From: Heteronotia binoei
Lineage: Eukaryota
Direction: 5' to 3'
DNA: 64,000 bases
Assembly (NCBI RefSeq): GCF_032191835.1
Contig: NC_083226.1
Location: 21,390,001 to 21,454,000 of the forward strand
The notes under the pieces were generated by a model that ran no database searches, was not told the origin of the DNA, and worked only from the letters and a program-made list of their open reading frames with translations. How positions within the stretch are numbered: position 1 is the stretch's first letter; every line of letters starts with the position of its first letter. This document shows, one piece after another, positions 15,420 through 58,397 of the stretch. Both the position numbers and the translations under genes were made by a program.

Positions 15420-15516
15420 ATGCAAACATCATATTGAACATCTCTGCAGAGTGTGCAAATATGAAATATTAGAACGGGATATAGATCTAGTAAGCCAATC
15501 CTTTATAGATTTGCAT
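15420..15516 (+). promoter_or_regulatory. putative POU/octamer regulatory module upstream of TAS2R
   Basis: ATGCAAAC 15420, GTGCAAAT 15453, perfect ATTTGCAT 15509-15516; same arrangement upstream of every paralog. Confidence 0.6.
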
Positions 15517-15682
15517 TCAGCAGAGCCAATCCTTGAAAGCAGCTCCCACCTTTTCAAGTGCTTTTGCATTCCTAGGAGGTCATACAGTTCTGCTGTGGGG
15601 TGTTCACATTGCTGAAAGAACAGCATTGGTAAATGAGTGGACATCACAGCAGAGGAAACATTTTTCCTTTTTGCTCAGAAAG

Positions 15683-16711
15683 ATGGCATCTGCATTCTTC
15701 ACAATACTGTTTACGCTTCTGGTTATGGAAGTCCTCGTTGGAATGATAGCCAATGGGTTTATTCTCCTCATCAATTGCATCGACTGGTTCAGAAGTAGGA
15801 AATTATCCCCAGTTGACTTGATCCTGAGCTGTCTTGGCTTGTCCAGACTTGCATGGCAGGCAATAGGCTTACTGGATGCAACTCTGTTTTTCTTTTTTCT
15901 GGGCACCTATCTATCCAGTTCCATGCAGTTAATGTTTCCTATCTTGTTTATGTTTATGAACACAGTCAATATTTGGTTTGCCACCTGGCTGAGTGTTCTG
16001 TATTTTGTCAAGATCACCATTTTCTCCCACCCAGTTATCCTTCGGGTGAAGCAGAGATTCTCCAGGTTGGTCCCATGGCTGCTTCTGGGCTCATTTGTCT
16101 TTTCTGCTGTTTTTACTACGATTATTATCACAGGCTTGAACTATGACGCTAGGAGTTGCCATCGCTACAAATCACTTCTAAGCAACAGCAATGATTCACA
16201 AATTAAAACACCTCCCTTCTGTTGGTACTTTACCATTCTAGCTACTGCTCCCCATTTCATTGCAATCTTGATATTTGCGTCATCCACCATCTTGTTAATA
16301 GTCTCTCTGTGGAAACACACAAGGAGTGTGCAATGCAATGGAGTTGGCCCCAGAGATCTCAGCACTCAAGTTCATTTGACTGCCATCAAAGCTCTGGCTT
16401 CCTTCCTTATTCTGTACCTGTCCTGTTTTATAGCGATCATTTTGCAGTCACTAATCACCTGGCGGAAGAATCACACTTGGACTTCTGTGCTTTATCATAA
16501 CGTGACTGCGGCATATCCTTCTGGACATGCCATTATCCTGATATTAATTAACCCAAGACTGAAACAGGCATGGGTCAGAATGCTACAGCATTTAAACTGT
16601 TTGAGAGACTTAGGCTGGTTTCACACTGTGAAATTGACACGATTGTATCGCATTCAGAAAAAATCCACTAAAGTTTGCACCATTTCTGGGCAATCAGAGA
16701 GCTGCTGCTGA
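15683..16711 (+). CDS. TAS2R: bitter taste receptor type 2, open ORF 342 aa with MITE-derived C-terminal 32 aa
   Basis: TAS2R motifs GMIANGFI.LINCIDW, LSPVDLILSCLGLSRL, WFATWLSVLYFVKI..FSHP, LLIVSLWKH, HLTAIK, YPSGHAIILILINPRLKQAW; ECL2 N-glycosylation site NDS. The ATG aligns with paralog starts. Confidence 0.95.
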   Translation: MASAFFTILFTLLVMEVLVGMIANGFILLINCIDWFRSRKLSPVDLILSCLGLSRLAWQAIGLLDATLFFFFLGTYLSSSMQLMFPILFMFMNTVNIWFATWLSVLYFVKITIFSHPVILRVKQRFSRLVPWLLLGSFVFSAVFTTIIITGLNYDARSCHRYKSLLSNSNDSQIKTPPFCWYFTILATAPHFIAILIFASSTILLIVSLWKHTRSVQCNGVGPRDLSTQVHLTAIKALASFLILYLSCFIAIILQSLITWRKNHTWTSVLYHNVTAAYPSGHAIILILINPRLKQAWVRMLQHLNCLRDLGWFHTVKLTRLYRIQKKSTKVCTISGQSESCC

Positions 16712-17163
16712 AATGGCAGGATCCTGGCAGCGGTCAGTGATTGCCCATTTACACTGCTAGTCGAGTTCAACCACGGACCTGCTGCAGAAAGGGTTGTCTC
16801 TTTTAAAAAAGGCCCTGTGTGTGCACTCAGTTGGAGAAGCAGTGAAGCGCACCTCGGAGAGGGTGAGGGGTAACCCCCCTCCTCCCTCCCTTGCCAGAAA
16901 CGGCTTGGTGCAATCACACAGCTCTTCCACTTATGAACCGCCCTAGGGCATTCAGACAGCAGCTGATTATGCAACCTACATCCGATTCAGGGGGATGCTA
17001 CTGGGAAAATCCAGGTAGCTTTTTGAGGCAGATAGGAGGCGTCTGGAGACAGGGTTAGTGTGGGTGCAGCTCGGAGGGCAGATGTGCTCGTGTGATTGTG
17101 CACTTTTAATCCTTTATGGGAGGCAGGGCTAGGTCGGGGCAAATCTCTTGTGTGAAACCACCC
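16613..17163. mobile_element. PIF/Harbinger-type MITE inserted two codons before the ancestral TAS2R stop
   Basis: TIR GGCTGGTTTCACAC / GTGTGAAACCACCC (13/14); TTA TSD at 16610-16612 and 17164-17166. Confidence 0.9.
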
Positions 17164-17809
17164 TTACTGTCTTAGAACCTCTCAAGAGGCCATTGGGAGA
17201 AGATATGCTCTTGAGGAAGAAGGATCCTGAAAAATCGTTTGAGTACAATCCCCAAAGCAGGGGTGCTCTATCCATCAGATACACCTAGGCTATCACCTAG
17301 GGCACTAGAGGTAGAGGGGTACCCAAATCAACTTGGGGCCCATGTTATCTCAAGAAACCTTATTAATGGTATAGCTTCTTGAACAGAATAGGCCTGAGAA
17401 TTTACTTTTAGTTTTCAGATTTGCAAATGTATATGCTTCTTACAGTTTTAAGTTTTCTCTCGTTCCAGCCTTGAGGAAGGAATGAGAATTTTGGGGGTAT
17501 AAATTTTAGAGAGTCAAAGTTCCCTCTTTCATGAAGGGAGGTTTGACTCTTGAAAGCTTATCTTTTTGGTCTCTACAGTGCTACTGTACTTGAATCTAGC
17601 TGTTCTACCACAGAGCAACATGGTTATCCTCTGAAACAATCTCAAGAAAAATAATCTATGACTAAAATGAACATGCCTAGACTAAATCTTACAATAAGTA
17701 GAACTCAGTTCAAAACAATTATTCTTTGGAAGATGCCACTCAATGCTCAGTTTACATCATGGCAGAGGAAACAAATTAAAAGAAGAAAAAAAAGTGGAGG
17801 AAGAAGAGG

Positions 17810-18021
17810 AGGGGAAGAAGGAGATTGGATTTATACCCCACCTTTCACTCAGGGTCAGAGCTGCTTATAATCTCCTTCCTTTCCTCTCCTGACAACAAAC
17901 ACCCTGTGAGGCAGGTGGCGCTGAGAGAGCTCTGAGGCTAGCTGCATGTTGAGGAGTGGGGAATCAAACCCGCTTCTCCAGATTAGAGTTTGCCATTCTT
18001 AACCACTACTCGATGGCTCTC
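17810..18021 (-). mobile_element. tRNA-derived SINE (Squam3-like, shorter variant)
   Basis: Shares GGAGTGGGGAATCAAACCC and ATTGGATTTATACCCC with the other copies. Confidence 0.8.
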
Positions 18022-18225
18022 TTATTTAGATGTTTTGATACAGTTATGCGAGGGTCATGTAACTGGGCATTTATAATGTAGCCCTGACCTAGATAGCCCA
18101 AACTAGCCCAATCTCATCAAAACTCAGAAGCTAAAGAATAAGACTTAGAAATTTCGTAAGCATAAGACTTAGAAATTGTTAAATAATTTAAATAATATCT
18201 AGATTTTTAGAATGGTTCAAACTTA

Positions 18226-18491
18226 GGCCGTTTTCCCACAGAGCTTACCACGGAGCGACGTCCCTCTTCACCGCGCAGCGTCTGCGCGGATTTCCCACCA
18301 ACTGCTCTGCAGAACCAGGAAGTGCCGGACCTTTTGCATCGCAGATGTAAACCGCTAAAAACCAGTTTACGTTAGTGACGCAAAAGCCGCGGCTCTTCCT
18401 GGTTATGTGGAGCAGTTGGTGGGAAATCCGCGCAGACGCTGCGTGGTGAAGAGGGACATCGCTCCGCGGTAAGCTCTGTGGGAAAACGGCC
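18226..18491. mobile_element. fully palindromic Harbinger-type MITE (266 bp)
   Basis: GGCCGTTTTCCCACAGAGCTTACC...GGTAAGCTCTGTGGGAAAACGGCC; TTA TSD on both sides; CpG-rich, so probably young. Confidence 0.92.
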
Positions 18492-18524
18492 TTAGAGTGT
18501 AAAAATCTAACTGCAAAAGATGTA

Positions 18525-18842
18525 TCTTTATTAGTAGACTATCACAACTCAGAAAGTTCTTGTTTATTCCTCAATATTCCTCAATTGAGAATTCACCTCA
18601 ATATTGTAATAATGATGTTTTACTATCTGCTTTCACATTTGAAATTATTAAATAATGAAGACAATATAGATATTGAGGATGGATTAAATTTAGTGCAGGG
18701 ATTTCTCTAATTGTAAAAGATTGAATATTTTTATTATTAATAGAATATAGCAGAAAGTTCTTGTTTAGTCTTCTAAAGAGAGAACTCACCTCCAAATACT
18801 GTAATAATGACACTTTACTATCTGCTGTAACATTTGAAATTT
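18525..18842. repeat. diverged ~205-bp tandem duplication
   Basis: CAGAAAGTTCTTGTTTA...TTTACTATCTGCT...CATTTGAAATT occurs twice. Confidence 0.75.
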
Positions 18843-18914
18843 GTATTTTTATGAAAACAGTTGATTTTACTCGTTGTATGTAATTACTCATAATACTTGA
18901 AAATTACTGATGAA

Positions 18915-19222
18915 ATTAAGAAGAATTGAAGAATTGCAGATTTATACCCTGCCCTTCTCTTTGAATCAGAGACTCAGAGCAGCTTACAATCTCCTTATCT
19001 TCTCCCCTCACAACAAACATCCTGTGAGGTGGGGGGGGGCTGAGAGGGCTTTCACAGCACCTGCCCTTTCAAGGACAACCTCTGCGAGAGCTATGGCTAA
19101 CCCAAGGCCATTCCAGCAAGTGCAAGCGGAGGAGTGGGGAATCAAACCCGGTTCTCCCAGATAAAAGTCCATGCATTTAACCACTACACCAAACTGGCTC
19201 TCCACACCAAACTGGCTCTCCA
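18915..19222 (-). mobile_element. tRNA-derived SINE (Squam3-like)
   Basis: Same family; short head duplication CACCAAACTGGCTCTCC x2. Confidence 0.85.
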
Positions 19223-19349
19223 TTACATTTCCTCCTTCTCCTTCCCTTTCTTACCCCACCTTTCTCTCTCTCTCTCTTTTTTTTTTGGAAAAATAGAAAA
19301 CCCCATGACAGTCAGTGACAACTTGATGACAGAAAAAAAAAAAGCCACA

Positions 19350-19760
19350 CCCTAAAAGGGAAAACCCAGCTGGCTATCTCCGGACCAAAGGAGGCAAAAC
19401 TACAAAATACTCGCACACGGGCCTTCTCTATCGCAGCTCCACACCTATGGAACCAGCTCCCGGAAGAAGTGCGAGCCCTGCAGAGCCTTGACCAGTTCCG
19501 CAGGGCCTGCAAGACCACCCTTTTCAGGATGGCCTTTGCCGGCTGAGTGACTGATGTTAGGTGACTTCTATCACCATTATTTTATGAACAGAATTAGCAC
19601 CTGAAATCTATTTGTATTTGTATTCGTTTTAAATTGGAATGTTTTAAGACTAATGTGATTTTAAACCTTTGTATAATTATATGAATATGTTGTTAGCCGC
19701 CCTGAGCCCGCTTCGGCGGGGAGGGCGGGATATAAATAAAATGTTATTATTATTATTATT
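19350..19760 (+). mobile_element. L2 3' fragment
   Basis: RAFSIAAPHLWNQLPEEVRAL...FRRACKTTLFRMAF-like translation, GCCGCCCTGAGCC..GGGCGGGATATAAAT tail, (TTA)n. Confidence 0.88.
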
Positions 19761-19799
19761 GAATTGCTTAGATCTGGGTTGTGATGAGGCTAACTTATC

Positions 19800-20566
19800 C
19801 AGGGGTGTCAAACATGCGGTCCGGAGACCAGATCAGGCCCCCAGAGGGGTCCTATGAGGCAGTGGTGGACTGGGTCTGAAAATATTGGCTGCCAGGAGAC
19901 AAAGGGGGCCCACCCACAACTATGAGACTATCATTTAATTTTTATAAAAAATAAATAAAATATTCAAAAATACATCAGTGGAAAAAAGGTACAATTAAAA
20001 CTTTTGCAAAATAATTTTTAATTTTTTTTCATTAAAATAGTAATACAACGTAAATTTTAGTTGCATTTACAGTAATAATATTGGGACTTCTATTATATGT
20101 TCAAGCTACTAAAAGGTCATTACCATTTTTAACATATTGCCTAATGTTTAAGGGGGCCCACTTCATCAGGGACCCACTTGACATTGGGCAAGCTGACACC
20201 CTGGCCAGTCTGGCACTGCTATGAGGCCAATGAGCAAATCAAAAGTAGGTTTGCAACTTGCAGTTTCACACCTGAACAACACTTGAACAGTATTCTCAAA
20301 ATTGCTACAGCACAGACATTGTCTCCAGTTTTTGATGCAATAATTCAGAACAAACGGTGTCAGTTATCAGAAATCGTTAAATGAATAAAATATTGCAAGG
20401 GTGCTAATGTTTTAAGTGTGTTTTATTTTAAGTTTTAAAAAAAAAATCTTTGTGTTTGTCTGTGTCCGCTACCTGGCATTACAATTTATGACACCCATGG
20501 TCTGGCCCAACAAGGCCTTATTTATATCAGATCCGTCCCTCTTAACAAATGAATTCAACACCCCTG
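19800..20566. mobile_element. hAT-type MITE (CAGGGGTGT termini) containing a nested MITE
   Basis: Termini CAGGGGTGTCAAAC / CAACACCCCTG; no clean TSD seen. Confidence 0.7.
19860..20218. mobile_element. nested hAT-type MITE
   Basis: TIR CAGTGGTGGACTGG / CCAGTCTGGCACTG; perfect 8-bp TSD CTATGAGG. Confidence 0.88.
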
Positions 20567-21939
20567 AGATCTTTTCTGATCTTTTCAGTAACAATTAATT
20601 ACACATTTATTCAAAATCCAATTAAAATGCTTTAGTTTAATTTATTCAACAAAACTGATGAAGCCGATCCAATGATACCAGCTTTTCAATGTGGGCTAGT
20701 CACTTAGCAAGCAAACTATTTAATTGTTCAGTAAATTCTTAATATGTTGAATGAGCTTGATAAAGTGATACCAATTCCCCAGTGTCTGGTTTAAAGTCAT
20801 TCTGCCGGAGTCTTAAATCACCACATTCAGTAATCTGGAGTCAATTTGTTTTCTTGGAGAGAAGTTGGAAGGCCACACTAAAATTATGTTCCACCAAATA
20901 TGGGAATGCAACAAGCAACTTGTTAACCATTGTCTATAGTGCTGGATAATGACAAGAAATTTCCTTGTATAACCAAAACTTTTGTTAACATTTCTTAAAC
21001 TCTGGCTTCAGTTCAATGCCATTTTGTAGGTCAGTTCTTTCATTAACCCAGTTTCCCACAGAGTTACGCTTACATAATCTGGAAATATTAATATTGGGCA
21101 GACTGACAAAAATTACACTTATATAGCTGAAAAGCATATTTCATAATCAAGAGTTTCAGTAACTGAGAATGCAGGAATATAAATACCACACTCCCATATT
21201 GTTATGTTATGAATTTAGCAGCAGAAACTTTTTAAAATGACAAAGAAACAAAAACAAAAGCAATGACAACACCTTCTCAAAACTGATCTGCCTAGAGCTG
21301 TGGTGGGGTATTTATTAGAAATTCCAGTAGTTTCCACCGCTTTTCAGCACTATGCAGAGACAGAAAATTGGAGTACCATTTGCCAGCATCTAGGTTCTAG
21401 TCTCATCTATCATAAATAAGTGCACAATACTGTGAAAGGGACCCACATTGGCTATGGCCCTACATCAGTTCTAGTTAAAAAAAAAAAAAAGGAAGGGACA
21501 TAGGTAGCTCTAGGAATCACCAGAAATATTGTAGTTTTATCATAGAGTTTCTGGTGATCCCTAGAGCTACCTATGTCACATCTGAGGGTTTTGGGTTTTT
21601 TTGCTGGAAGTGACATGACACTGCAGCCAGTGTCACACCAGGGGTTATTTTTCACCTGTCATCATAAGTGTTTAAACTAACTAGATCTGTATACCCCCCA
21701 AACAATAATTCCTATGCACTTTATTTCTTCATTGTTAATCTTAATCTTTTGAAAAACAGAATCACTTCCACAATGTGTTAAATTCACATGGAACACAAGA
21801 ATTTCAGTTATTTTCCAGACTGATCTTACATCCACAGACTTAATACAATAATAATTGAATACCTTAATTGATTCTCTAGAAGGTTTTCTGGATATGTCAT
21901 GTAAACTACCATGTCATCAGTAAATACATTTATTTTATA

Positions 21940-23489: not shown

Positions 23490-24434
23490 TTAAGATTGTG
23501 CTCCACTCAAATGGCATTTAAAGTGATGTAGCATCCTGACCCATGCCTGTTTTAGTTTGGGGTTAATTCGTATCAGGATAATGGCATGTCCAGAGCGACA
23601 AATAACACTCATATTGTTAAACAGCATAGATGGCCAAGTGTGCTTCTTATTACTCAAGGTTAGTATTGCTTGCAAAGTAATTGCTAGAAAACCAAACAGA
23701 TATAGAACAATGAAGGAAACTTGAACTTTAATGGCAGTCAGGTGAACTTGCGTGTTGAAATCCTTGACACCAGTTCCATTGTGTTGCATATGTCTTGTGT
23801 GCTTCCACATAGACGTTATTAGCAGGATGGATGATGACAAAAATATCAGAAAAGGAATGGAATCTGGGGCAGTAGCTAGAATATCCATGCTTCTACAGGA
23901 GTCAACCATTTTAGTTTTTGAATCATTGGTGCTCAAAAATGATTTGTAGGGGTTGCATTTGGACAAATCATTGTTCAAGCCTGCAAGTACAGTAATTGTC
24001 ATGATAGCAGAGAAGATGATTGAGCCCAGAAGCAACCACGGTATAAGTCTAGAGATTCTTTGCTTCATTTGGAGGAAAATAGGGTGGGAGAACATGGAGA
24101 TCTTTGCAAAGTAGAAAACACTTAGCCAGGTTGCAATCCAGATACTAGCAGTGTTTGTAAAAATCCAGACGATGGGAAGCAGTAAATACATGACATTCCA
24201 AATATGATTGCTTGGATAAAAGAAATGCAGAATTTCTTCCAGAATCACTACCATCAGCCACACAAGTCTGGACAAGCCAAGACAGGTCAGGATCAGGTCA
24301 GCTGGGGATAGTTTCCAGCTTTTGAACCAGTCAATGCAATTGGTTAGGACAATAAATCCATTTCCTACCATTCCAACGAGGGTTTCAATAGCCAGAAGTA
24401 TAAAACAAATTAATGTGAATAACGGAGCTTCCAT
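23490..24434 (-). CDS. TAS2R: bitter taste receptor type 2, open ORF 314 aa
   Basis: GMVGNGFIVLTNCIDW, LSPADLILTCLGLSRL, WIATWLSVFYFAKI.MFSHP, SMWKH, HLTAIK, SGHAIILI.INPKLKQAW; start taken at MEAPLF by alignment with paralogs. Confidence 0.93.
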   Translation of the reverse strand: MEAPLFTLICFILLAIETLVGMVGNGFIVLTNCIDWFKSWKLSPADLILTCLGLSRLVWLMVVILEEILHFFYPSNHIWNVMYLLLPIVWIFTNTASIWIATWLSVFYFAKISMFSHPIFLQMKQRISRLIPWLLLGSIIFSAIMTITVLAGLNNDLSKCNPYKSFLSTNDSKTKMVDSCRSMDILATAPDSIPFLIFLSSSILLITSMWKHTRHMQHNGTGVKDFNTQVHLTAIKVQVSFIVLYLFGFLAITLQAILTLSNKKHTWPSMLFNNMSVICRSGHAIILIRINPKLKQAWVRMLHHFKCHLSGAQS

Positions 24435-24571
24435 ATTTCTGAGTACAAAAGTTCTTCTGCAGTAATGCTCACTCTTTTCCTGATTATGTCCTTTCACAAG
24501 GCAATTCTACGACCTTCAGTGAAAAACAACTGGAGAGGCAGGAGCTATTTTCCAGTGTAGACTCATTTGAG

Positions 24572-24673
24572 AGGCAAATCTTTCCAAAAAAGGACTGGGT
24601 TCTGACATATATATCCTGTTCTAATATTTCGTATTTGCACATTTTGCAGAGATGCTAAAAACTATCTTTGCAT
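24572..24673 (-). promoter_or_regulatory. octamer module (proximal site degenerate AGGCAAAT)
   Basis: AGGCAAAT 24572, ATTTGCAC 24633, CTTTGCAT 24666. Confidence 0.5.
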
Positions 24674-33172: not shown

Positions 33173-33261
33173 CTTTCTGAGCGCAAAGGAAAGGAGTTTC
33201 TTCTGCTGCAATATTCACACTTTTCCTCAGCAGCACACAGCACAACGCTGGAGTCCCCTAG

Positions 33262-33397
33262 CAGGGGTGGCCAAAAGTAGCTCTCCAGATGTTTTTGCCT
33301 ACGACTCCCATAAGTCCCAGCCATTGGCCATGCTGGCTGGGGTTGATGGGTGTTGTAGGCAAAAAAACATCTGGAGAGCTACTGTTGGCCACCCCTG
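33262..33397. mobile_element. palindromic hAT-type MITE in the 5' flank of the pseudogene
   Basis: CAGGGGTGGCCAA...TTGGCCACCCCTG; absent from paralog flanks. Confidence 0.88.
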
Positions 33398-33457
33398 CTC
33401 TAGTTTAAGAACCCATCTGAGAGTTAGGAGCTATTTTCAAGTCCTGGCTCCATTAAA

Positions 33458-33558
33458 ATGCAAATTGTTGTGGAAAGGACTATGTTACTAAATCTGTGTC
33501 CCATTCTAGGATGTCACATTTGCACATTTGACATAGATGCTAAATATGATCTTTGCAT
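33458..33558 (-). promoter_or_regulatory. octamer module
   Basis: ATGCAAAT 33458, ATTTGCAC 33518, CTTTGCAT 33551. Confidence 0.55.
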
Positions 33559-36424: not shown

Positions 36425-37489
36425 TTAGGATAACAGCATGCCCAGAGGGATACAAAGCACTCATAGTTAGAAAAAGTACAGCTGTCCAAGAGAGATCATT
36501 GCTTATCCAAACCTTTATTTCCTGTAAATTGAGGACTACAAAATTGGAAAGGTACAAAATAGCAAAGGAAGCCAGAGTTTTGATGGCAGCTAAGCGAATG
36601 CTGATCTGGAGATCCTTGGTGCTGATTCCATTGTGTTGCAAATGTCTTAATGTATTTTCACAGAGATATTATTAGCAAGATGGTGGATGACAAAAACATT
36701 AGAGAAAGAACGAAACCTGGAGCAGTAATGGCAATGAAGAGCTGCCAAAACAAGTGAGGCTTTTAAACTTCTGAATCATAGCTATTGTTTAAATGTAATT
36801 TGTAGGGATCACAGATGGTTAAGGCACTGCTCGATACTATGGTAATAGTAATAGCCACAGTCATAAAAGCAGAGAAGTCCACTGAGCCAAAAAGTAGCCA
36901 TGGGACCAGGCCAGAGAATCTTTGCTTCACTTGGGGGATAATTGGGTGGGAGAAAGTGGAAATCTTTACAAAGTGCTGAGCCAGGTGGCAAACAAGAAGT
37001 TGAAAATGTATGTAAAGAACACATCATGTTAAAAAAGAAATGATTCAATATAAAAATGTGGAGAAAAAAGGAAAGTGTAGTCACATCTAGAATCACTACT
37101 GCCTGCCATGTGAGTCTGGCCAAGCCAAGACAGGTCCGAATCATATCCATTGGAGAGGGTTTCCTGCTTCTGAACTAGTCAATGCAACCAATGAGGACAA
37201 TGAATCCCTTTGCTATCATTTGGACGAGGGTTTCCATGATGAGAAATGCAAAGCCGGTTATCGACAGCAATGTGGCTATCTTTATGAGCATAAGAGAGTT
37301 TGTTCTGCTGCGATATTCACACTTTCCATCAACAGCACACAGCACAACAAACCTTCCATTTAAGATCAGATCAGGGGGTTTGGAGCTATGTTCAAGTGCT
37401 GGTCCTGGATGCAAATCTTCCTAGGAAGGGCCATGTTACTAAATCTATGTCCTGTTTCTAGGATGTCATATTTACACATTTCCCCCTTC

Positions 37490-39785: not shown

Positions 39786-40733
39786 TCAAGACGGTACTTC
39801 ACTCGCACACCATTTTAAGTGATGCATCATCTTGATCCATGCCTCTTTCAGTTTGGGATTAATTCCTATCAGGATAACAGCATGCCCAGAGGGATACAGA
39901 ACACTCATCGTTTGAAATATCACAAATGTCCAGGAGTGATCAGTGTTTCTAGAAAACAGCATTGGCTGTAAACTGTTAGCTACAAAACTGGAGAGGTACA
40001 ACATAGCAAAGGAAGCCAGAGTTTTGATGGCACTTAAATGAACGCTGGTGTTGAGATCTTTGTTGCCGATTCCATTGTGTCGCAAATGTCTTATGTGCTT
40101 CCACAGGGACATTATTAACAAGATTGTGGATGATAAAACTATCACAGACGGAATGACGTTTGGAACAGTAACTGCAATGGAAAGCTGCTTACACTTGTGA
40201 AGCACTTCAACTTCTGAACCGTAGCTATTGTTTAAAAATAATTTGTAGGAATGACAACTGATAAAGCTACTGCTTGATGCTGCAATAATAGTAATAGTCA
40301 TAGCCATAAAAGCAGAGAAGGCCACTGAGCCCAGAAGCAGCCATGGGACCAGCCCAGAGAATCTTTGCTTCGCATGGAGGAAAACAGGGTGGGAGAAAGT
40401 GGTGATCTTGACAAAGTACAAAATGCTGAGCCAGGCGGCGAATGTAAGATTGACATGGCATGTGAAGAACCACGCCATGGTGATCATTAAATAGACATGA
40501 TTCAATACATAAGTGTGCAGAAAAAAGGAAAGTGTTGTCACATCCAGAATCACAACTGCCAGCCATGCAAGTCTGGCCAGGCCCAGGCAGGTCAGGATCA
40601 GGTTAGTTGGGGAGAGTTTCCTACTTCTGAACCAATCAATGCAGCCGATGAGGACAATAAACCCATTTGCTACCATTCCGACGAGGGTTTCCGTGATGAG
40701 AAGCGCAAAGCCAGTTATCGCTGAAGTGTCCAT
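39786..40733 (-). CDS. TAS2R: bitter taste receptor type 2, intact 315 aa (319 aa from the in-frame ATG at 40745)
   Basis: All TAS2R motifs present (GMVANGFIVL.GCIDW, LSPTNLILTCLGLARL, FSHP, SLWKH, YPSGHAVILI.INPKLK); NNS glycosylation site. Confidence 0.96.
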   Translation of the reverse strand: MDTSAITGFALLITETLVGMVANGFIVLIGCIDWFRSRKLSPTNLILTCLGLARLAWLAVVILDVTTLSFFLHTYVLNHVYLMITMAWFFTCHVNLTFAAWLSILYFVKITTFSHPVFLHAKQRFSGLVPWLLLGSVAFSAFMAMTITIIAASSSSFISCHSYKLFLNNSYGSEVEVLHKCKQLSIAVTVPNVIPSVIVLSSTILLIMSLWKHIRHLRHNGIGNKDLNTSVHLSAIKTLASFAMLYLSSFVANSLQPMLFSRNTDHSWTFVIFQTMSVLYPSGHAVILIGINPKLKEAWIKMMHHLKWCASEVPS

Positions 40734-40875
40734 CTTTCTGAGCATAAGAGAAATGAGTTTCTTCTGCTGGGATATTCAGCCTTTCCACCAACAGCACCCG
40801 GCACAACACTGGGGCCCTCTGCTTAAGAACTCATCTTGGAGTTAGGAGCTATTTTCAAGTCCTGACTCTGTTAAG

Positions 40876-40977
40876 ATGCAAATGTTCGTAGAAAGGACCA
40901 TGTTACTATATCTGTGTCCTGTTCTAGGATGTCACATTTGCACATTTGACATAGATGCTAAATATGATCTTTGCACC
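40876..40977 (-). promoter_or_regulatory. octamer module
   Basis: ATGCAAAT 40876-40883, ATTTGCAC 40936, CTTTGCAC ~40969. Confidence 0.6.
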
Positions 40978-43582: not shown

Positions 43583-44524
43583 TCAAGATGGTGCTTCATT
43601 CACACCACATTTTAAGTGATGTATCATCTTGACCCATGCCTGTTTCAGTCTGGGATTAATTACTATCAGGATAACAGCATGCCCAGAGGGATACAGAGCA
43701 ATTATCGTTTGAAATATCGCAGATGTCCAGGAGCCATCAGTGTTTCCAAAAAACAGTATTGCCTCTGTACTGATACCTACAAAACTGGAGAGGTACAATA
43801 CAGCAAATGAAACCAGAGCTTTGATGGCACGTAAATGAACATTGGTGTTGAGATCCATGGTGCTGATTCCATCGTGTTGCAAATGTCTTATGTGCTTCCA
43901 AAGAGATACTATCAACAAGACAGTGAATGACAAAAATAACACAGATGGGATGACGTTTGGAACAGTAACTGCAATGAAAAGCCGCCAACACTTGTGAAGC
44001 ACTTCAGCGTCTGAACCATAACTATTGTTTAAAAATAATTTGGAGAAATCGCAAGTGATTAAGCTACTGCTTGATACTGCGAGAATAGTCATAGCCATAA
44101 AAGCAGAGAAGGCCACTGAGCCCAGAAGCAGCCATGGGACCAGCGCAGGGAATCTTTGCTTCGCATGGAGGAAAAGAGGGTGGGAGAATGTGGTAATCTT
44201 TACAAAGTAAAAAATGCTGAGCCAGGTGGCAAATGTAATGTTGACATTGTATATAAAGAACCACACCATGGTGATCATTAAATAGACATGATTCAATACA
44301 TAAGTGTGCAGAAAAAAGGAAAACGTAGTCACATCCAGAATCACTACTGCCAGCCATGCAAGTCTGGCCAAGCCAAGGCAGGTCAGGATCAGGTCAGTCG
44401 GGGAGAGTTTCTTACTTCTGAACCAATCAATGCAGCCGATGAGAACAATAAACCCATTTGCTACCATTCCAACGAGGGTTTCCATGATGAGAAGTGCAAA
44501 GCCAGTTATCGACAAAGTGTCCAT
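43583..44524 (-). CDS. TAS2R: bitter taste receptor type 2, intact 313 aa
   Basis: All TAS2R motifs present; closest in-window relative of the gene at 39786-40733. Confidence 0.96.
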   Translation of the reverse strand: MDTLSITGFALLIMETLVGMVANGFIVLIGCIDWFRSKKLSPTDLILTCLGLARLAWLAVVILDVTTFSFFLHTYVLNHVYLMITMVWFFIYNVNITFATWLSIFYFVKITTFSHPLFLHAKQRFPALVPWLLLGSVAFSAFMAMTILAVSSSSLITCDFSKLFLNNSYGSDAEVLHKCWRLFIAVTVPNVIPSVLFLSFTVLLIVSLWKHIRHLQHDGISTMDLNTNVHLRAIKALVSFAVLYLSSFVGISTEAILFFGNTDGSWTSAIFQTIIALYPSGHAVILIVINPRLKQAWVKMIHHLKCGVNEAPS

Positions 44525-44650
44525 CTTTCTGAGCGTAAGAGAAAAGAGTTTCTTCTGCTGGGATATTCAGCCTTTCCACCAACAGCACCCAGCACAACAC
44601 TGGGGCCATCTGGGAGTTAGGAGCTATTTTCAAGTTCTGGCTCTGTTAAG

Positions 44651-44752
44651 ATGCAAATCTTCCTGGAAAAGGATTATGTTACTAAATCTGTGTCCTGTTC
44701 TAGGATGTCACATTTGCACATTTGACATAGATGCTAAATATGACCTTTGCAT
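44651..44752 (-). promoter_or_regulatory. octamer module
   Basis: ATGCAAAT 44651, ATTTGCAC 44712, CTTTGCAT 44745. Confidence 0.6.
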
Positions 44753-51692: not shown

Positions 51693-52640
51693 TTAAGATG
51701 GTGCTTCACTCATATGACATTTTAAGTGGTGTATCATTCTGACCCATGCCTGTTTCAGTTTGGGATTAATTAATATCAGGATAACAGCATGCCCAGAGGG
51801 ATACACAGTACTCATAATCTGAAAAATTCCAGCTGTCCAAGAGCTATCATTCCTTATCTGAACCAGTAATGATTGTATATTGATGGTTACAAAACTGGAG
51901 AGGTACAAAATAGCAAAGGACGCCAGAGCTTTGATGGCAGCTAAGTGAACGCTGGTGTTGAGGTCCTTGGTGCTGATTCCGTTGTGTCGCAAATGTCTTA
52001 TGTGCTTCCAAAGAGATATTATTAACAAGACTATAAATGACAGAAATATCACAGAAAGAATGAAACCTGGAGCAACAACTGCAATGAGAAGCTGCCAACA
52101 CAAGTGAGGCACTTTAACTTCTGAATTATAGCTATTGTTTAAATGTAATTTGAAGGGATCACAAATGGTTAAGGCACTGCTCGACACGGCGATAATAGCC
52201 ATTGTCATAGTCATAAAAACAGAGATGGCCACTGAGCCCAGAAGCAGCCATGGGACCAGCCCGGAGAATCTTTGCTTCACTTGGAGGAGAATTGGGTGGG
52301 AGAAGATGGCGATCTTGACAAAGTAAAAAATGCTCAGCCAGGTGGCAAAAAAGAGGCTGACAGTGTATGTAAAGAACCACATTGCGTAAAAAAGGAAAAA
52401 GAAATGCTTCAATGCAAAAGTGTGCAGAAAAAAGGTAAGCAGAGTCACATCTAGAATCACTATTCCCAGCCATGCGAGTCTGGTCAAGCTCAAGCAGGTC
52501 AAGATAAGGTCAGTCGGGGAGAGTTTCCTGCTTTTGTACCAGTTAATGCAGCCCATGAGGACAATAAACCCATTTGCTACCATTCCGATGAGGGTTTCTA
52601 TGATGACAAGTGCAAAGCTTGTTATCCATGAAGCGTCCAT
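51693..52640 (-). CDS. TAS2R: bitter taste receptor type 2, intact 315 aa
   Basis: All TAS2R motifs present; first ATG is at 52640 (the track start at 52652 is GTG). Confidence 0.96.
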   Translation of the reverse strand: MDASWITSFALVIIETLIGMVANGFIVLMGCINWYKSRKLSPTDLILTCLSLTRLAWLGIVILDVTLLTFFLHTFALKHFFFLFYAMWFFTYTVSLFFATWLSIFYFVKIAIFSHPILLQVKQRFSGLVPWLLLGSVAISVFMTMTMAIIAVSSSALTICDPFKLHLNNSYNSEVKVPHLCWQLLIAVVAPGFILSVIFLSFIVLLIISLWKHIRHLRHNGISTKDLNTSVHLAAIKALASFAILYLSSFVTINIQSLLVQIRNDSSWTAGIFQIMSTVYPSGHAVILILINPKLKQAWVRMIHHLKCHMSEAPS

Positions 52641-52782
52641 CTTTCTCAGCACAAGAGAAAACAGTTTCTTCTGCTGCGATATTCACACTTTCCCTCAACA
52701 GCACACAGCACAACACTGGGGCCCTTTGTTTAAGAACCCATCTGGGCGTTAGGAGCTATTTTCAAGTGCTGGCCCTGTGAAG

Positions 52783-52877
52783 ATGCAAATCTTTCTGAAA
52801 AGGACTATGTTACTAAATCCTGTTCTAGGATGTCATATTTGCACATTTGACATAGACCCTAAATATGATCTTTGCAT
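52783..52877 (-). promoter_or_regulatory. octamer module
   Basis: ATGCAAAT 52783, ATTTGCAC 52837, CTTTGCAT 52870. Confidence 0.6.
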
Positions 52878-54497
52878 CTGTTTTCACAAATGATGAAGTG
52901 CTCTTCTTGTGGGATTTGTTGACGTTAAAGCATTATTTGCCAAGTTCCACCCACTATTATTAATTGTATCGAAGGAAAAACCTTTCTCTTGATTGATAGG
53001 CAGAACAATCTAGTGCTGTGACAGCCCCCAGCTGCATAACTAGGGAGATGCTAGTCCATCCCCGATAGGATACGTTATGCAATGGCCAACAGACAAAGTC
53101 AGTTGGTTCATGGCGTTTTAAAAGCATAACTGGGGTACCATCCATCCTGACCACATCCCTGCAGTCAACGAAGGCTTTTGTAGGTGGTGGTACTATGATG
53201 GACAGGTCAGACAGAACCAATCAGAGTTCATGGGGCAAGGGGATGGAGTCTAGCATCCATCTCTGGCAGTCGGCAAAGAGGGACAGGCCAAAGGAGTTCT
53301 CCTTATTTTCAGCAATACCTTCCACCCCCCTAAAGGGACCAGCTCCTGTCAATGATCCAGGCACCTGACAGTAAGGAAGGGGTTCCAGGTTTCTGCCCCA
53401 CGGGCATCCACAGCTGTCTTAATGCCCATACAGAGCACAGAGTCCCTGAAGGGAAGAAGGGGGAGGGAGGTTGTCATTGCCACCTTACACAATTGGGGAT
53501 GTCCTTTCCTCAATGATGGGTGAGCTTCCCAGTTGGCCAGCCACATTGCTGAGGGCACTTCCTGCCAGTGGTGGAGCAGGAGAGGGGGGCCACTGAGATA
53601 TAGGGGCATGTAGCATCACACTCAGGTCCCAAATTGCCTCCTCAGTGGAGCAGAAGTTATCTGGGACTGGAATGACCATCATTTCACTTTGGGCGCTGTC
53701 ATTCCACTCCCAGAGCTATCCATACGCAGATACTGTCATTCAAAATCCATCGCCCACCCATCATTATTTCCTTGTGCAGTAAAGTACTGCAATGGAACCC
53801 ATGCAAGACACTGGGCATTTCTGGCTACCAGTATGGGCACTCAAGCTTCTCCCATTGTTCTCAATCGGCAGTCCTGTCAGTTACTTTAGGACATCCCCTC
53901 TTGATACTCTGGCTTCCTCAGAGTCCCTTGTGACATCCTCCATATTCCTGTAAGCTGCTCCACAGACAACCCCTCCATGCCCCAGAAGAAAGCATCCCTC
54001 CCTTACAGTAGGACTCAAGCTGCTGCTGCTTGGTTGACGCCCAAGGGTCCCAGCAAGGGCTCATACTCACTTGCTACAGCATCCAGGATTTGTCACAGGT
54101 GCTCTCCTCCCTTACCAGTGCTCTCCCTACCCAGCTCCCACCAAAGACATCAAGTCTGCCTGCTGCATTGCCTCCTCCCCAGCCGTTGACTCTGGGGACC
54201 CCATGATCCCCTAACCCTTCATTGATGCCTTCAAAAGTCTTCCCCTTGGGTGACAGAAGTCTCCACTTCTTAGAACAGACACAGCGTTATGGGCTCCATT
54301 CATTCCCTCTATTCATTCCCCTCCTTTCTCCCCAATGGGGCACCCAAATGGCTTGCATTGTTCTCCTCTCCTCCATTTTATGATACTCACAACTACCCTA
54401 TCAGGTTGGTTGGGCTGAGAGTGTGTAACTGGCCCAAATCTACCCTCCTATCTTGTCTGTTCTAGTGGTGAAAGCATCACAATAAGGTGTGTGTACC

Positions 54498-55133
54498 CAG
54501 GGCCTGCTCACCCACTAGGCAAACTAGGTTATGAATAGCCTAGGGCACCGAGAGGCGGGGGGTGGCAAATTGGGCTCTCGCCACCCCAGTGCCCCAGCGC
54601 TTAGCTTGCTTCCCTTCCCCCTGCCGTGGCCGCCACCCACCCACCCTCCAGGTGCGGGGTCCCCCCCCCCCGCCCACGCCCCCCCAGCACTCCGCTTACC
54701 TGCCCGCTGCTAAAAGTGGTGGTGCTTCACTCGCTCCCTTCCCCCTGCTCGCCGACTAAAAGTAAGCTTTGCCGACTTTGCAGCTCACGCCTGCGCGTTT
54801 TGTCTCTTAACAAAACATGCAGCCGTGGGCTGTGAAGTCGGCAACGCTTACTTTTAGCAGATGAGCAGGGGGAAGGGAGTGAAGTGGCAGTGGGCAGGTG
54901 AGCAGAGCACCGGGAGGGGGGGGGTGGGGGGGTGGGACACTGTGTGGGGGGCGGGGTGCCAGAATGTGGCATTAGAGCTGGTTCTGGCATTGCAATTGAC
55001 ATGTGGGGAAGGGAGGGAAGGGGCGCGGCGGGGAGGGGGCTTGGAGCTGCAGGGGGGAGCTGTGGGGGTGCTTTTGGGGGGGCGCCAGGCAGCAAGTCTG
55101 CCTAGGACACCCCAGGGTGTCGGGCCGGCCCTG
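54498..55133. mobile_element. hAT-type non-autonomous element
   Basis: TIR CAGGGCC.GC / GCCGGCCCTG; perfect TSD TGTGTACC. Confidence 0.9.
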
Positions 55134-55269
55134 TGTGTACCACTTCTTCATGGCAGAAAGATTGCACTAATTCCCTCTCTGCTCAAGCCTGGAGTCATAT
55201 TTGGAATTCCTTCACATTCAAATCCCCTAGCATCACTATTTGCATCCCGTTTTTCAAAACCCTGTCGCA

Positions 55270-55945
55270 CTAGTCTCTTGCTCCACAGAAATTACATTTT
55301 GCACAAAATATTCAATCCCCACTTTGCTGGAGAGGTTGTAAAGAAAATGGCACATACAGACATTGTTGGTGGTCTTGTTCTTATGTTTAAAATTAATCAT
55401 GACTCAAATTCATGATATTACTCATGTACAAGTTCCTCTCCGAATGGAAGCTCTACTATTGAATCATTGGCATCCCTATATGAATAACTCAACTAAGATG
55501 GAGCTAATAGAAACTCTCTGTGCAGCAGCTAGGACAGTTCTGGCAAGATATTGGAAAACGAATACAAAACCTACTCTCCTTGACTGACTCCTAAAGGTAC
55601 AGGAGTGCTGTATTACGGATAAATTATCAGATTCTCAGACTCGAGGTGTAACAGGCCTTTATACCTCAAAATTTGTGTCCCTTTGGTTTCCGTTCCTTGA
55701 ATTTCTAGCTCATAAACCAGAATTTGCATCAATCATGGATGCTATCAACATTGTTTACTAACTTTCTTATATATTTGAAATCCTATAGGTGAAGTTTTGA
55801 ATTTGCCAGGTATTTGCCTTTTATTTTTTTTCTGAATATTTTGATCCTATCTCTATGTATTTGTCTTCAGTCCTGGTTATTTCTAATTGTATTTGATTTA
55901 TTTATGTATGTATATATGTATTCATATTTCTTTCAATAAATATTG
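55270..55945 (+). mobile_element. L1 LINE 3' fragment
   Basis: LCAAARTVLARYWKT..KPTL.DW-like...DKL...KFVSLWFPFLEFL, then an AT-rich 3' UTR with AATAAA. Confidence 0.85.
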
Positions 55946-56544
55946 GTTGTTTTTCCTTTTAAAGGTGTATGTACAAATCCTTAGCCCAGTAAGTTTGGAT
56001 CCCTTGCCCTTGTTTACCTCTTTGGGTCAAGCCTCCAAAAGGTGGAGAATAGGGTTGCCAAGTCCAATTGAAGAAATATCTGGGGACTTTTGGGGTGGAG
56101 CCAGGAGACTTTGGGGGTGGAGCCAGGGGAAAGGTTGCGACAAGCATAATTGAACTCCGAGTTCTGGCCATCACATTTAAAGGGACCACACATCTTTTGT
56201 TTTAAAATAAATAAATCTTTATTAAAAGCGAAGATCTTTGACTTACAAATGCATAAGAAGAGCATAAAATGACATTGTCCAATTGCACCGCAAAAAATAG
56301 TCAAAAGAAATACTGCATAAAATAGCATGAACAGAGAAATAATAATTAAATACGAGGCAACCAAATAATACACCCAGAAATGTGCCTCTCAGACCTTAAA
56401 CAACTAATAATGAAGCCAAGAATGATGACTGCAGTTGGAAGGAAGAATACTGCCCTGGGGCAGATAGTGGGACATCAGAAAGACACCGTGCTGAAAAGGG
56501 GAACGTCAGAGCAGCATAGGGTGAGTGCGAAATCAGTCTGGGTT

Positions 56545-56613
56545 TTAAGATGGTGCTTCATTCACATGACATTTTAAGTGATGTATCATCCTGATCCATG
56601 CCTTTTTCAGTTT
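56545..56613 (-). pseudogene. TAS2R: isolated TAS2R 3' fragment (helix 8 + stop)
   Basis: Minus translation KLKKAWIRMIHHLKCHVNEAPS*; nothing upstream aligns to TM1-TM6. Confidence 0.85.
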
Positions 56614-57208
56614 GTGTCCCCCTTAGGTTTGGATTAATTTACATTTTCAAGCGAAAACAGGAAGCAAAACGCGGGCATTTCTGACCTCACCCCCTAACTA
56701 TCCAGTCCCTTCTTCTCACAGGTGCTCCTGAATCAGCACTCTGGCCTTGTGGTTCCTACGGAAACCGCCCAGGCCGGTGGAAAGAATCTTGGTAACTTGT
56801 TGCAAAGACAAGCAAGGCAGAAGGGAAAGCAAAGCAGTACAGTAATATAAAGATTCACACATTAACCATGGCAAGGCACTTGACATTAGCAAGAAGTTTT
56901 CTGTGGCACCTTGTAAAATCTGCCCGATAAGGGTGGCTTAAGCTTTTTACATGTGCTTATTGAGGACATTTGATAATAATTTTACTCCTCACACATTGCA
57001 TGTATAATATGTGGGAGTGAATTCTTCAGTCTTTCTTATTTACAGTTGCTGTGAACCTTGGTATGACTTGTTCTAATACAGTTGATATTAATGTTTTAAT
57101 ACAGATGATAAATACCAGGAAAATTTCAGGATGGATTGCTCCCCGAGGGTTTTTCAGGTTCCTTCTTTATCAAGAAAATGTCCTCTCTCTTTGTTCCTTT
57201 GATAGGTT

Positions 57209-58153
57209 TTAAGATGGTGGTTCACTCACATGACATTTTATGCGATGTATCATCCTGACCCATGCCTGTTTCAGTTTGGGATTGATTAATATCAGGATAA
57301 CAGCATGTCCAGAGGGATACGCAGCACTGATATTGTGGAAAAATACAGATGTCCAAGAACCATTGTTTCTTCTCCAATACAGTATTGTTTGTAAACTGAT
57401 GGCTAGCCAACAGGAGAGGTACAAAGCAGCAAAGGAAGCCAGAGCTTTGATGGCACTTAAATGAACATTGGTGTTGAGATCCCTGACTCCAATTCCATTG
57501 TGCTGCAAATGTCTTGTGTGCTTTCACAGAGATATTATTAACAAGATTGTGGATGACAAAAATATCACAGAAGGGATGAGATTTGGAATACTACGTGAAA
57601 TGACTAGTTCCATACAAGTGCGAGACTCCTGAATTTCTGAATCATAGCTATTATTCAAAAGTAATAAGTAGGGATCACAAATGGCTAAGTCACTGATAGG
57701 TCTTGCGAAGGCAATAATAGTAATCAAAGCAGAGAAAACTACTGAGGCAAGAAGCAGCCATGGGATCAGGCTTGAGAATCTTTGCTTCACTTGGAGGAAA
57801 AGAGGGTGGGAGAAGATGGCGATCTTTGTTAAATACCAAACACCAAGACAAGCAGCAAACCAAAGATTGACAGTTTCTGTAAAGGACCACAAGATAACAA
57901 CACTTAAATGTACCGGTTCCGTTAGATAGGTGTGAAGAAAAAAGGACAACATAGTTACATGCAGCATGACTAGTGCCTGCCACATTAATCTGGATAAGCC
58001 AAGACAGATCAGGATCAAGTCAGTGGGGGATAGTTTCTTGCTTCTGAACCAGTCAATGCAATTGATGAGGACAATAAATCCATTTGCTACTATCCCAACG
58101 AGGGTTTCCATGATGAGAAGCACAAAGCTAATTATCAAGAACAAGGTTGCCAT
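57209..58153 (-). pseudogene. TAS2R: TAS2R with a single premature stop (SLW to SL*, TGA 57524-57526), otherwise intact 314 codons
   Basis: ORFs 57524-58225 and 57209-57508 are in the same frame; all motifs intact. Confidence 0.93.
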
Positions 58154-58297
58154 CTCTCTAAGCCCAAAAGAAAAGTGTAGAGTTTCTTCTGCTGCGATAC
58201 TCACACTTTCCCTCCAGCGCAACACTGGGTCCCTCCGTTTATGAACACAAAAACATCAGGGTGGCAGGAGCTATTTTTGTGTGCTGGCTCTGGGAAG

Positions 58298-58397
58298 ATG
58301 CAAATCTTCCTGGAAAAGGCCATGTTACTAAATCTACGTTGTGTTCTAGGATGTCATATTTGCCCATTTTCATAGATAATAAAGATGAGCTTTGCAT
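58298..58397 (-). promoter_or_regulatory. octamer module
   Basis: ATGCAAAT 58298, ATTTGCCC ~58358, CTTTGCAT 58390. Confidence 0.55.

Follow-up and report, generated by a model that had tools for sequence, protein, structure and literature searches.

The promoters of the immunoglobulin V genes resemble those of the bitter taste receptor genes (TAS2R) described here in that the genes form a large tandem multigene family and every one of them carries an octamer of its own, some tens of base pairs 5' of a TATA box. The V-gene promoters are read by Oct-1/Oct-2 together with OCA-B, and the V-kappa promoters carry the octamer in the same inverted form, ATTTGCAT. Their cell specificity comes from the lineage-restricted OCA coactivator, which requires an adenine at position 5. 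The two systems differ in the genes, the cell type and the reader, the latter presumed to be POU2F3 with OCA-T for TAS2R. A conserved Oct-binding motif has also been described upstream of one taste receptor gene, TAS1R4 (Nishihara et al. 2023, Nat Ecol Evol; PMC10781636). As in TAS2R, the motif ATGCAAAT lies less than 300 bp upstream of the open reading frame and is conserved across distantly related vertebrates, geckos and an anole among them; the authors proposed Skn-1a/POU2F3 as the reader (PMC10781636). TAS1R4 is, however, a single-copy class-C receptor gene; Oct sites were not seen in other novel TAS1Rs, and TAS2R was not treated (PMC10781636). The TAS2Rs form a tandem family of dozens of class-T2R genes, in which both the orientation of the octamer and its TATA-like partner are fixed; the constraint on the octamer was measured against 4-fold sites. 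In contrast to the one published site for TAS1R4, we found no conserved Oct site reported for TAS2R in the literature.

The third related system comprises the POU2F3/OCA-T enhancers of tuft cells and tuft-like lung cancer, which require an octamer whose fifth base is adenine (PMC12755459), as is the case in the TAS2R sites. These enhancers were defined by ChIP in mammalian cells. TAS2Rs are markers of tuft and type II cells, and their transcriptional control was called poorly understood by a 2021 review and a 2023 study (PMC10239704). Our literature search returned no report that POU2F3/OCA-T target sites include TAS2R promoters, and no paper showing POU2F3-dependent expression or promoter occupancy at mammalian TAS2R.

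The window analysed here is a stretch of 64,000 nucleotides from Heteronotia binoei chromosome contig C4. Eight TAS2R copies (A–H) have their 5' end inside it, together with one orphan promoter copy; the 5' end of a ninth, partial copy (63620-63999) lies outside. The genes are matched by Pfam PF05296 (TAS2R) with E values of 1e-39 to 1e-67. The features are listed below, site 1 and site 2 denoting two octamer-like sites upstream of the octamer.

6934..7057, + strand: orphan promoter copy (duplicated gene A 5' region); site 1 ATGCAAAC 6934-6941, site 2 GTGCAAAT 6964-6971, octamer ATTTGCAT 7020-7027
15420..15546, + strand: gene A promoter module; site 1 ATGCAAAC 15420-15427, site 2 GTGCAAAT 15453-15460, octamer ATTTGCAT 15509-15516, TATA-like GAAAGCAGCTCC 15535-15546
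15683..16711, + strand: TAS2R gene A CDS, open; ATG 15683
23490..24434, - strand: TAS2R gene B CDS, open; ATG 24434
24541..24673, - strand: gene B promoter module; site 1 24666-24673, site 2 24633-24640, 7/8 octamer ATTTGCCT 24572-24579, TATA-like GAAAATAGCTCC 24541-24552
33260..33399, unstranded: palindromic MITE, 140 bp, between the pseudogene C TATA-like box and ATG (33172); arms 37 nt, 97% complementary
33427..33558, - strand: pseudogene C promoter module; site 1 33551-33558, site 2 33518-33525, octamer 33458-33465, TATA-like 33427-33438
37382..37477, - strand: pseudogene D promoter remnant; octamer 37409-37416, TATA-like 37382-37393, site 2 degenerate (GTGTAAAT) 37470-37477, site 1 lost
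39786..40733, - strand: TAS2R gene E CDS, open
40845..40976, - strand: gene E promoter module; site 1 GTGCAAAG (6/8) 40969-40976, site 2 40936-40943, octamer 40876-40883, TATA-like 40845-40856
43583..44524, - strand: TAS2R gene F CDS, open; 313 aa, Pfam TAS2R
44620..44752, - strand: gene F promoter module; site 1 ATGCAAAG 44745-44752, site 2 GTGCAAAT 44712-44719, AGTAAC box 44678-44683, octamer 44651-44658, TATA-like 44620-44631
51693..52640, - strand: TAS2R gene G CDS, open
52752..52877, - strand: gene G promoter module; site 1 52870-52877, site 2 52837-52844, octamer 52783-52790, TATA-like 52752-52763
57212..58153, - strand: TAS2R copy H, interrupted by one in-frame TGA; ATG 58153
58267..58397, - strand: gene H promoter module; site 1 ATGCAAAG 58390-58397, site 2 degenerate (GGGCAAAT), octamer 58298-58305, TATA-like AAAAATAGCTCC 58267-58278

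No TAS2R coding sequence follows the orphan promoter copy, and a tRNA-like SINE lies nearby at 7186-7258. In pseudogene D the start codon has changed from ATG to ATA at 37279.

The nine octamers named in the preliminary description were all recovered: those at 7020, 15509, 33458, 37409, 40876, 44651, 52783 and 58298 are perfect (seven TAS2R copies and the orphan), and that of gene B at 24572 matches at seven of eight positions. Every perfect module octamer reads ATTTGCAT in gene orientation. The fixed upstream position that had been claimed also held, as the first base of the octamer lies 134-174 bp 5' of the ATG in all window modules except pseudogene C, where the distance is 293 bp because of the MITE insertion. 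The whole window contains 13 perfect octamers, compared with 5.2 expected from shuffles; eight of them fall within TAS2R upstream modules in a single orientation, and the remaining five correspond to the chance level.

Selective constraint was assessed by Fitch counts on the coding-sequence tree of 32 intact paralogs, with 4-fold sites as the neutral yardstick. Promoter columns changed 3.25 times on average and 4-fold sites 2.96 times, so that outside the conserved elements the promoter drifts at the neutral rate. The proximal octamer accumulated four changes in its eight columns versus 23.7 expected from 4-fold sites (P 8e-7), the lowest count of 280 8-column windows, which makes it the least-changing 8-mer of the whole promoter. 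In pairwise comparisons, promoter identity tracks 4-fold identity (0.62 vs 0.64 for the deepest paralog pairs), while octamer identity stays at 0.86-0.92. Between Heteronotia and Podarcis, identity is 0.56 at 4-fold sites, 0.566 in the promoter, 0.968 in the octamer and 0.887 in the TATA-like box. The proximal octamer is thus held by purifying selection. A functionless motif, carried along by tandem duplication or homogenised by gene conversion, would fit the youth of the paralogs, whose whole 250-bp promoter is still alignable and evolves at a mean rate equal to that of 4-fold sites. Our data already contradict this reading, which has next to no chance of being right: the eight octamer columns change about 6-fold less than their neighbours and 4-fold sites, and gene conversion is not expected to spare 8 bp selectively. 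The motif also occurs on three chromosomes and in six further genera, and it keeps its place in lineages whose proteins share 24-33% identity and whose upstream DNA cannot be aligned.

The distribution of the octamer was surveyed in 79 TAS2R genes of 11 species, each represented by one to seven genes apart from Heteronotia. A perfect octamer was present within -300..-1 in 58/79 genes, and in 56 of these 58 it read ATTTGCAT, at a median position of -165; matched control windows contained one in 3/77, 2/77, 3/78 and 2/79 cases. The octamer was found in 13 of 19 upstream clusters that BLAST could not align to each other (binomial P 5e-17), and an unbiased tally of 8-mers in one representative of each of the 19 clusters put ATTTGCAT first. 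Carriers include frog, turtle, anole, skink, lacertid and three geckos. In bird genes and one gecko subfamily, a recurrent G-to-A variant of the octamer, ATTTACAT, stands at the homologous place and follows the same AGTAAC-type box; EMSA has established ATGtAAAT as an Oct1/Oct2 site (PMC1800861). The gharial gene has a 7/8 octamer, and three intact gecko genes (L014, L019 and L025) lack a perfect one. Unlike the mammalian POU2F3/OCA-T enhancers, the one rodent gene sampled (Acomys, named taste receptor type 2 member 1) is without the motif, with no perfect octamer in 21 kb.

Three elements make up the core of these promoters: the inverted octamer, an AGTAAC box before it and a TATA-like box after it. 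In amniotes the AGTAAC box is co-conserved and located 19-25 nt 5' of the octamer. The TATA-like box GAAAATAGCTCC starts 27-28 nt past the octamer start in the squamate main clade and is itself constrained (20 changes vs 35.5 expected, P 0.003; 32 paralogs, Fitch). In other sauropsids the box reads TATTAA or TATTTAA and lies at 29-35 nt, and in frog and bird genes it is TATAAA at 40-67 nt. The arrangement of a TATA element a few tens of base pairs 3' of an octamer is therefore present. In comparison with the immunoglobulin V promoters, the TATA-like box of the gecko TAS2Rs is a weak TATA, and we infer the transcription start, as well as the bound factor and the cell type. The conserved element would represent the TAS2R core promoter, with the inverted octamer followed about 20 bp further on by the weak TATA-like box. 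A TATA-like box at about -30 would put the octamer roughly at -55 to -65 from the predicted transcription start, which for gene F is expected near 44595-44605; immunoglobulin V-gene promoters have their octamer at a like distance. The whole promoter unit is copied at every tandem duplication, so that a new receptor gene is born with the same promoter.

The preliminary description had presented the octamer as one of three in a conserved module. The two further sites indeed occur at similar spacing, site 2 (GTGCAAAT) 54-61 bp and site 1 (ATGCAAAG/C) 86-94 bp upstream of the octamer, and are intact in most window copies, with degradation in D, E (site 1) and H (site 2). An obligatory module of three octamer-type sites, conserved as a unit and bound cooperatively by POU2F3, would account for these fixed distances (about -60 and about -93), for the same spacing in Paroedura, one Sphaerodactylus gene and all four Podarcis genes, for the perfect ATGCAAAT at site 2 in four gecko paralogs, and for the pairing of an upstream ATGCAAAT with the proximal ATTTGCAT in the deep lineages L038 and L043 and in Tiliqua. 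We nevertheless consider it improbable, as neither distal site is constrained above the neutral expectation: site 2 underwent 19 changes, not significantly fewer than the 23.7 expected, and about 22 were counted at site 1 (32 paralogs, Fitch). In the Heteronotia–Podarcis comparison, the distal sites rank 62nd and 24th among 261 windows. Even in copies retaining the distal block, site columns (0.856) are not significantly better conserved than neighbouring distal columns (0.795, P 0.16), and the block has been lost from about 15/45 main-clade copies whose open reading frames persist. The conservation claimed for the triple module thus stands for the proximal octamer and fails for the distal sites, which are no better conserved than neighbouring bases and often lost. 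They belong to a dispensable upstream block of about 60 bp, ancestral to the gecko–lacertid main clade, and are at most auxiliary. The conserved unit is one octamer with a TATA-like box, joined in amniotes by the AGTAAC box, and not a triple octamer.

The octamer suggests that a POU factor which binds this motif, probably POU2F3, controls the genes directly. The best explanation overall, to which we assign a probability of about 0.6, is a constrained octamer/TATA-like TAS2R core promoter read by a class-2 POU factor, most likely POU2F3; in taste and solitary chemosensory cells this would be POU2F3 (Skn-1a) with OCA-T coactivators. The genome encodes three class-2 POU genes with near-identical POU-specific exons. 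The POU2F3 ortholog is represented by an exon at C12:~12.13 Mb (30/33 residues identical to PDB 9pfn, POU2F3; E 4e-13 vs about 2e-5 for POU2F1/POU2F2). POU2AF1 is located at C12:9.01 Mb, and a query with its OCA-peptide exon matched only POU2AF1 itself in this genome, with no OCA-T1/OCA-T2 hit. The adenine at octamer position 5 that OCA-T binding requires (PMC12755459) is kept at every site, in ATGCAAAT, ATGCAAAG, GTGCAAAT and the variant ATGTAAAT. The open chromatin of type II taste cells in the mouse is enriched in POU motifs, and the same scATAC study interpreted POU2F3 as a possible repressor (PMC10239704).

A non-POU factor reading the slightly longer overlapping word G-ATTTGCAT-C/G might explain why a G before the octamer and a C or G after it are also often conserved. 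We know of no other factor for this word, the conserved core is exactly the 8-bp octamer, and ATTTACAT, the variant that recurs, has been documented as an Oct site, which leaves this possibility very small. The octamer is a generic sequence that does not tell POU2F3 apart from POU2F1, POU2F2 or other members of the POU family. The ubiquitous POU2F1 (Oct-1), which reads octamers in histone H2B and snRNA genes, or another POU factor could therefore occupy the constrained octamer, with taste specificity supplied by the AGTAAC box, distal enhancers or cluster-level chromatin. The near-identity of the POU-specific exons and the co-conservation of the AGTAAC box are in line with such a division of labour, and for the TAS2R clusters of mammals, roles of CTCF and of accessibility at the level of the cluster have been suggested (PMC10239704; 2021 review). 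However, mammalian TAS2R expression is confined to POU2F3-dependent cell types, a ubiquitous activator on a TATA promoter predicts broad expression unless the gene is otherwise silenced, and the TAS1R4 precedent was interpreted as Skn-1a. We regard control by POU2F1 or another such factor as rather unlikely, though a more serious competitor to POU2F3 than the other alternatives.

POU2F3 is a lineage master regulator, and we know of no direct receptor-gene targets established for it in taste cells. A single element of 8 bp that is measurably under selection and keeps its position before TAS2R genes from frog to gecko provides a concrete and cheaply testable hypothesis. More tentatively, and with somewhat less than even odds, the octamer and TATA core may be ancestral to tetrapod TAS2R (>350 million years) and constitute a direct cis-code through which POU2F3/OCA-T wires each duplicated bitter receptor into chemosensory cells; ATTTACAT in birds and one gecko subfamily, and the loss in the rodent, would then mark lineages shifted to another input or expression domain. 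The octamer promoter may serve as an annotation marker for TAS2R transcription units and help to tell which pseudogenes have decayed promoters. Because the promoter belongs to the duplication unit, the birth-and-death TAS2R family would keep its correct expression.

Nine TAS2R copies were found in the window by tblastn, the query being the intact 313-aa receptor of gene F (43583-44524); their identity was confirmed by Pfam and the ATG positions were assigned by homology.

TAS2R copies in the window
Gene A: ATG 15683, plus strand, open frame
Gene B: ATG 24434, minus strand, open frame
Copy C: 33172, broken
Copy D: 37279, broken, ATG mutated to ATA
Gene E: ATG 40733, minus strand, open frame
Gene F: ATG 44524, minus strand, open frame
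Gene G: ATG 52640, minus strand, open frame
Copy H: 58153, broken, one TGA
3' fragment: window end

The whole-genome search (Heteronotia binoei, G000) gave 102 TAS2R matches, the majority in a 0.6-Mb cluster on C4, the contig that holds the window at 21390001-21454000, with smaller groups on contigs C1 and C3. Among the coding sequences of the main clade, that is the gecko paralogs related to the window genes (loci L001-L036), protein identity falls to 48% and 4-fold-site identity is still 0.64, which indicates that amino acids have changed quickly compared with silent positions as this clade expanded. The window also contains long retroelement ORFs at 9512-10630 (minus strand) and 59393-61036 (plus strand); one of the two regions is reverse-transcriptase-like, of LINE type, and the other holds two paired ORFs that are gag/integrase-like and include a CCHC knuckle, copia/Ty1 type by eye.

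The POU-type 8-mer proximal to these genes (the octamer) occurs in perfect form 13 times in the window versus 5.2 times expected from shuffles. Eight of the 13 lie upstream of TAS2R copies or in the orphan unit, a promoter copy at 7020 with no TAS2R coding sequence downstream, and the remaining five correspond to chance level. The preliminary description had listed these eight sites accurately; all are perfect and read ATTTGCAT in gene orientation, and copy B has ATTTGCCT at the octamer place. The first base of the octamer is located 134-174 bp 5' of the ATG in the window copies, except in pseudogene C: there, insertion of a palindromic MITE of 140 bp (33260-33399; 37-nt arms, 97% complementary) in the 5' leader, between the promoter and the ATG, has lengthened the distance to 293 bp. 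The nine upstream regions share about 250 bp of homology in a MAFFT alignment, with the elements in the order ATGCAAAG/C, GTGCAAAT, AGTAAC, ATTTGCAT, GAAAATAGCTCC, GCTCAGAAAGATGG. A tRNA-Thr-like sequence (SINE) is present at 7186-7258, just 3' of the orphan promoter copy.

Fitch changes per column were counted on the coding-sequence tree of 32 intact main-clade paralogs, with the expectation derived from 4-fold sites.

Fitch changes in promoter elements of 32 intact main-clade paralogs
4-fold sites: 2.96 changes per column
Promoter as a whole: 3.25 changes per column
Octamer ATTTGCAT (8 columns): 4 observed, 23.7 expected, P 8e-7
TATA-like GAAAATAGCTCC: 20 observed, 35.5 expected, P 0.003
Pre-ATG block GCTCAGAAAGATGG: 25 observed, 41.5 expected, P 0.004
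Distal site 2, GTGCAAAT: 19 observed, 23.7 expected, P 0.2
Distal site 1: about 22 observed, 23.7 expected, not significant

The similar rates of the whole promoter and of 4-fold sites indicate that the promoter drifts like neutral DNA, and against this background the motif-versus-flank test bears out the claim that the proximal octamer is more conserved than its surroundings; its total is the lowest among 280 eight-column windows. Promoter identity tracks 4-fold identity, at 0.62 versus 0.64 in the deepest paralog pairs, and octamer identity stays at 0.86-0.92 across paralog pairs. A perfect octamer was present in 29 of 32 intact genes versus 4 of 7 pseudogenes (Fisher P 0.059), which is only suggestive of more common octamer loss in pseudogenes. 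L004, a TAS2R copy at G000:C4:21496322-21497266 that is interrupted by one TAA stop, retains neither octamer nor TATA-like box; a long (TA)n microsatellite and further foreign sequence stand in place of its promoter.

The preliminary description had joined the proximal octamer with two distal octamer-like sites in a "triple-octamer" module. Sites 1 and 2 are found at -93 and -60 from the octamer, a spacing that is constant in roughly half of the main-clade gecko copies and that recurs in Paroedura, one Sphaerodactylus gene and all four Podarcis genes. The tree places Podarcis as sister to the whole set of main-clade genes of the gecko, so the distal block is ancestral to the gecko-lacertid clade. 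Between Heteronotia and Podarcis, the 4-fold mean and the promoter mean are both 0.56, and identity reaches 0.97 in the octamer, 0.77 in site 1 (rank 24/261) and 0.66 in site 2 (rank 62/261). Of the proposed module, the proximal octamer thus stands and the distal sites do not: in the 30 copies still aligning in the distal block, the site columns are conserved much like their neighbours (0.856 versus 0.795, P 0.16), and the block has been lost in about fifteen copies with open frames. Judged from these alignments, sites 1 and 2 appear to be a lineage-specific, dispensable addition to the promoter.

TAS2Rs that are 24-33% protein-identical to gene F occur on C1, C3 and elsewhere on C4, and in 8 of 9 such divergent gecko genes outside the C1 subfamily carrying the ATTTACAT variant the ATG is preceded, at 110-230 bp, by a perfect octamer. 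The comparison also took in TAS2R loci of ten further species, with few genes per outgroup.

Octamer upstream of TAS2R genes in other species
Paroedura: ATTTGCAT in 1/1 gene
Sphaerodactylus: ATTTGCAT in 3/3
Podarcis: ATTTGCAT in 4/4
Anolis sagrei: ATTTGCAT in 2/2
Tiliqua: ATTTGCAT in 3/3
Emys orbicularis (turtle): ATTTGCAT in 1/1
Pristimantis (frog): ATTTGCAT in 4/7, plus two 7/8 sites
Gavialis (gharial): ATTTGCAA (7/8)
Tricholaema (barbet, bird; L057): ATTTACAT in 3/4

The whole 21-kb locus of Acomys (spiny mouse) contained no perfect octamer, a single rodent gene being too few to speak for mammals. Over 11 species, a perfect octamer lies at -300..-1 in 58 of 79 genes (median position -165; 56 of the 58 read ATTTGCAT), with a background rate of 0.026 per 300 bp; control windows of the same genes gave 3/77 (-900..-600), 2/77 (-1300..-1000), 3/78 (3' flank) and 2/79 (coding sequence). 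When the upstream regions were BLAST-clustered into 19 mutually unalignable families, the motif was found in 13 (binomial P 5e-17), and ATTTGCAT ranked first in an unbiased 8-mer count with one representative per family (11/19). Hitchhiking or gene conversion as the cause of octamer conservation was rejected on the basis of the Fitch counts, the pairwise identities, the independent families and the matched controls. The proximal octamer-TATA promoter is genuine and kept by selection, and TAS2R lineages as far apart as those of frog and gecko share it. Several deep lineages also carry a perfect ATGCAAAT, the other orientation of the octamer, which lies 50-90 bp 5' of the inverted ATTTGCAT and forms a convergent pair with it (L038 and L043 in gecko, two Tiliqua genes at L059, and L012, L017, L029 and L030).

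Octamer-anchored comparison of all lineages revealed one more element in common: AGTAAC (or GTAAT/GTAAG) lies 19-25 nt 5' of the octamer. This box is present in the squamate main clade, the group of L039-42, Tiliqua and Emys, the gharial, L045, L043 and the gecko C1 subfamily; several lineages have the extended form AGTAAC-A/T-GAAT-C/A-C, and the bird genes have a looser match, GGTAAGG.

Positions of the AGTAAC box
Window: 33484-33489, 37435-37440, 40902-40907, 44678-44683, 52809-52814, 58324-58329
Other loci: L039, L041, L042, L044-L050, L055, L056, L059

On the other side of the octamer, a TATA-like element follows 27-35 nt downstream in sauropsids, and TATAAA 40-67 nt downstream in frog and bird genes. 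Immunoglobulin V promoters have the same octamer-then-TATA layout; the transcription start of the TAS2R genes here is a predicted one. ATTTACAT replaces ATTTGCAT in all six genes of the C1 subfamily (L044, L046-L050; G000:C1:16.28-16.33 Mb), and the shared upstream AGTAAC-type box places ATTTACAT of both this subfamily and the bird genes at a position homologous to the octamer. Orthology of the bird ATTTACAT genes with the gecko subfamily is not supported, as L040 and L043, both paralogs with a perfect octamer, are nearer to that subfamily in the tree; ATTTACAT thus probably represents two independent G-to-A changes, one in the gecko subfamily and one in the barbet. ATGtAAAT was shown by EMSA to be an Oct1/Oct2 site in the catfish IGH enhancer (PMC1800861).

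The genome contains three class-2 POU loci, whose POU-specific exons score alike and do not separate POU2F1, POU2F2 and POU2F3. The linker/homeodomain exon discriminates where the POU-specific exon fails and assigns the locus at C12:~12.13 Mb to POU2F3: 30 of its 33 residues are identical to human POU2F3 (PDB 9pfn; E 4e-13, versus about 2e-5 for POU2F1/2). POU2AF1 (OCA-B) is encoded at G000:C12:9.009-9.019 Mb, ~3 Mb from POU2F3 (C12:~12.127-12.134 Mb). This proximity resembles the linkage of both genes on human 11q23. OCA-T genes were not located, the OCA-peptide exon of gecko POU2AF1 as the query matching only itself in the genome. The adenine at octamer position 5, required for OCA-T recruitment (PMC12755459), is present in all octamer sites here, and accessible chromatin of mouse type II taste cells is enriched for POU-type motifs (PMC10239704). 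The proximal octamer most probably serves as a site for a class-2 POU factor, POU2F3 being the leading candidate.

Nishihara et al. described ATGCAAAT as conserved upstream of TAS1R4, geckos included, and proposed Skn-1a/POU2F3 as its reader, although TAS2R was not treated in that study (PMC10781636). A full-text search of literature outside subscription journals found no report of a TAS2R octamer; an earlier description may exist. The transcriptional regulation of TAS2R genes is little understood, according to a review (PMC8529754), and the octamer-TATA promoter provides a directly testable handle on it.
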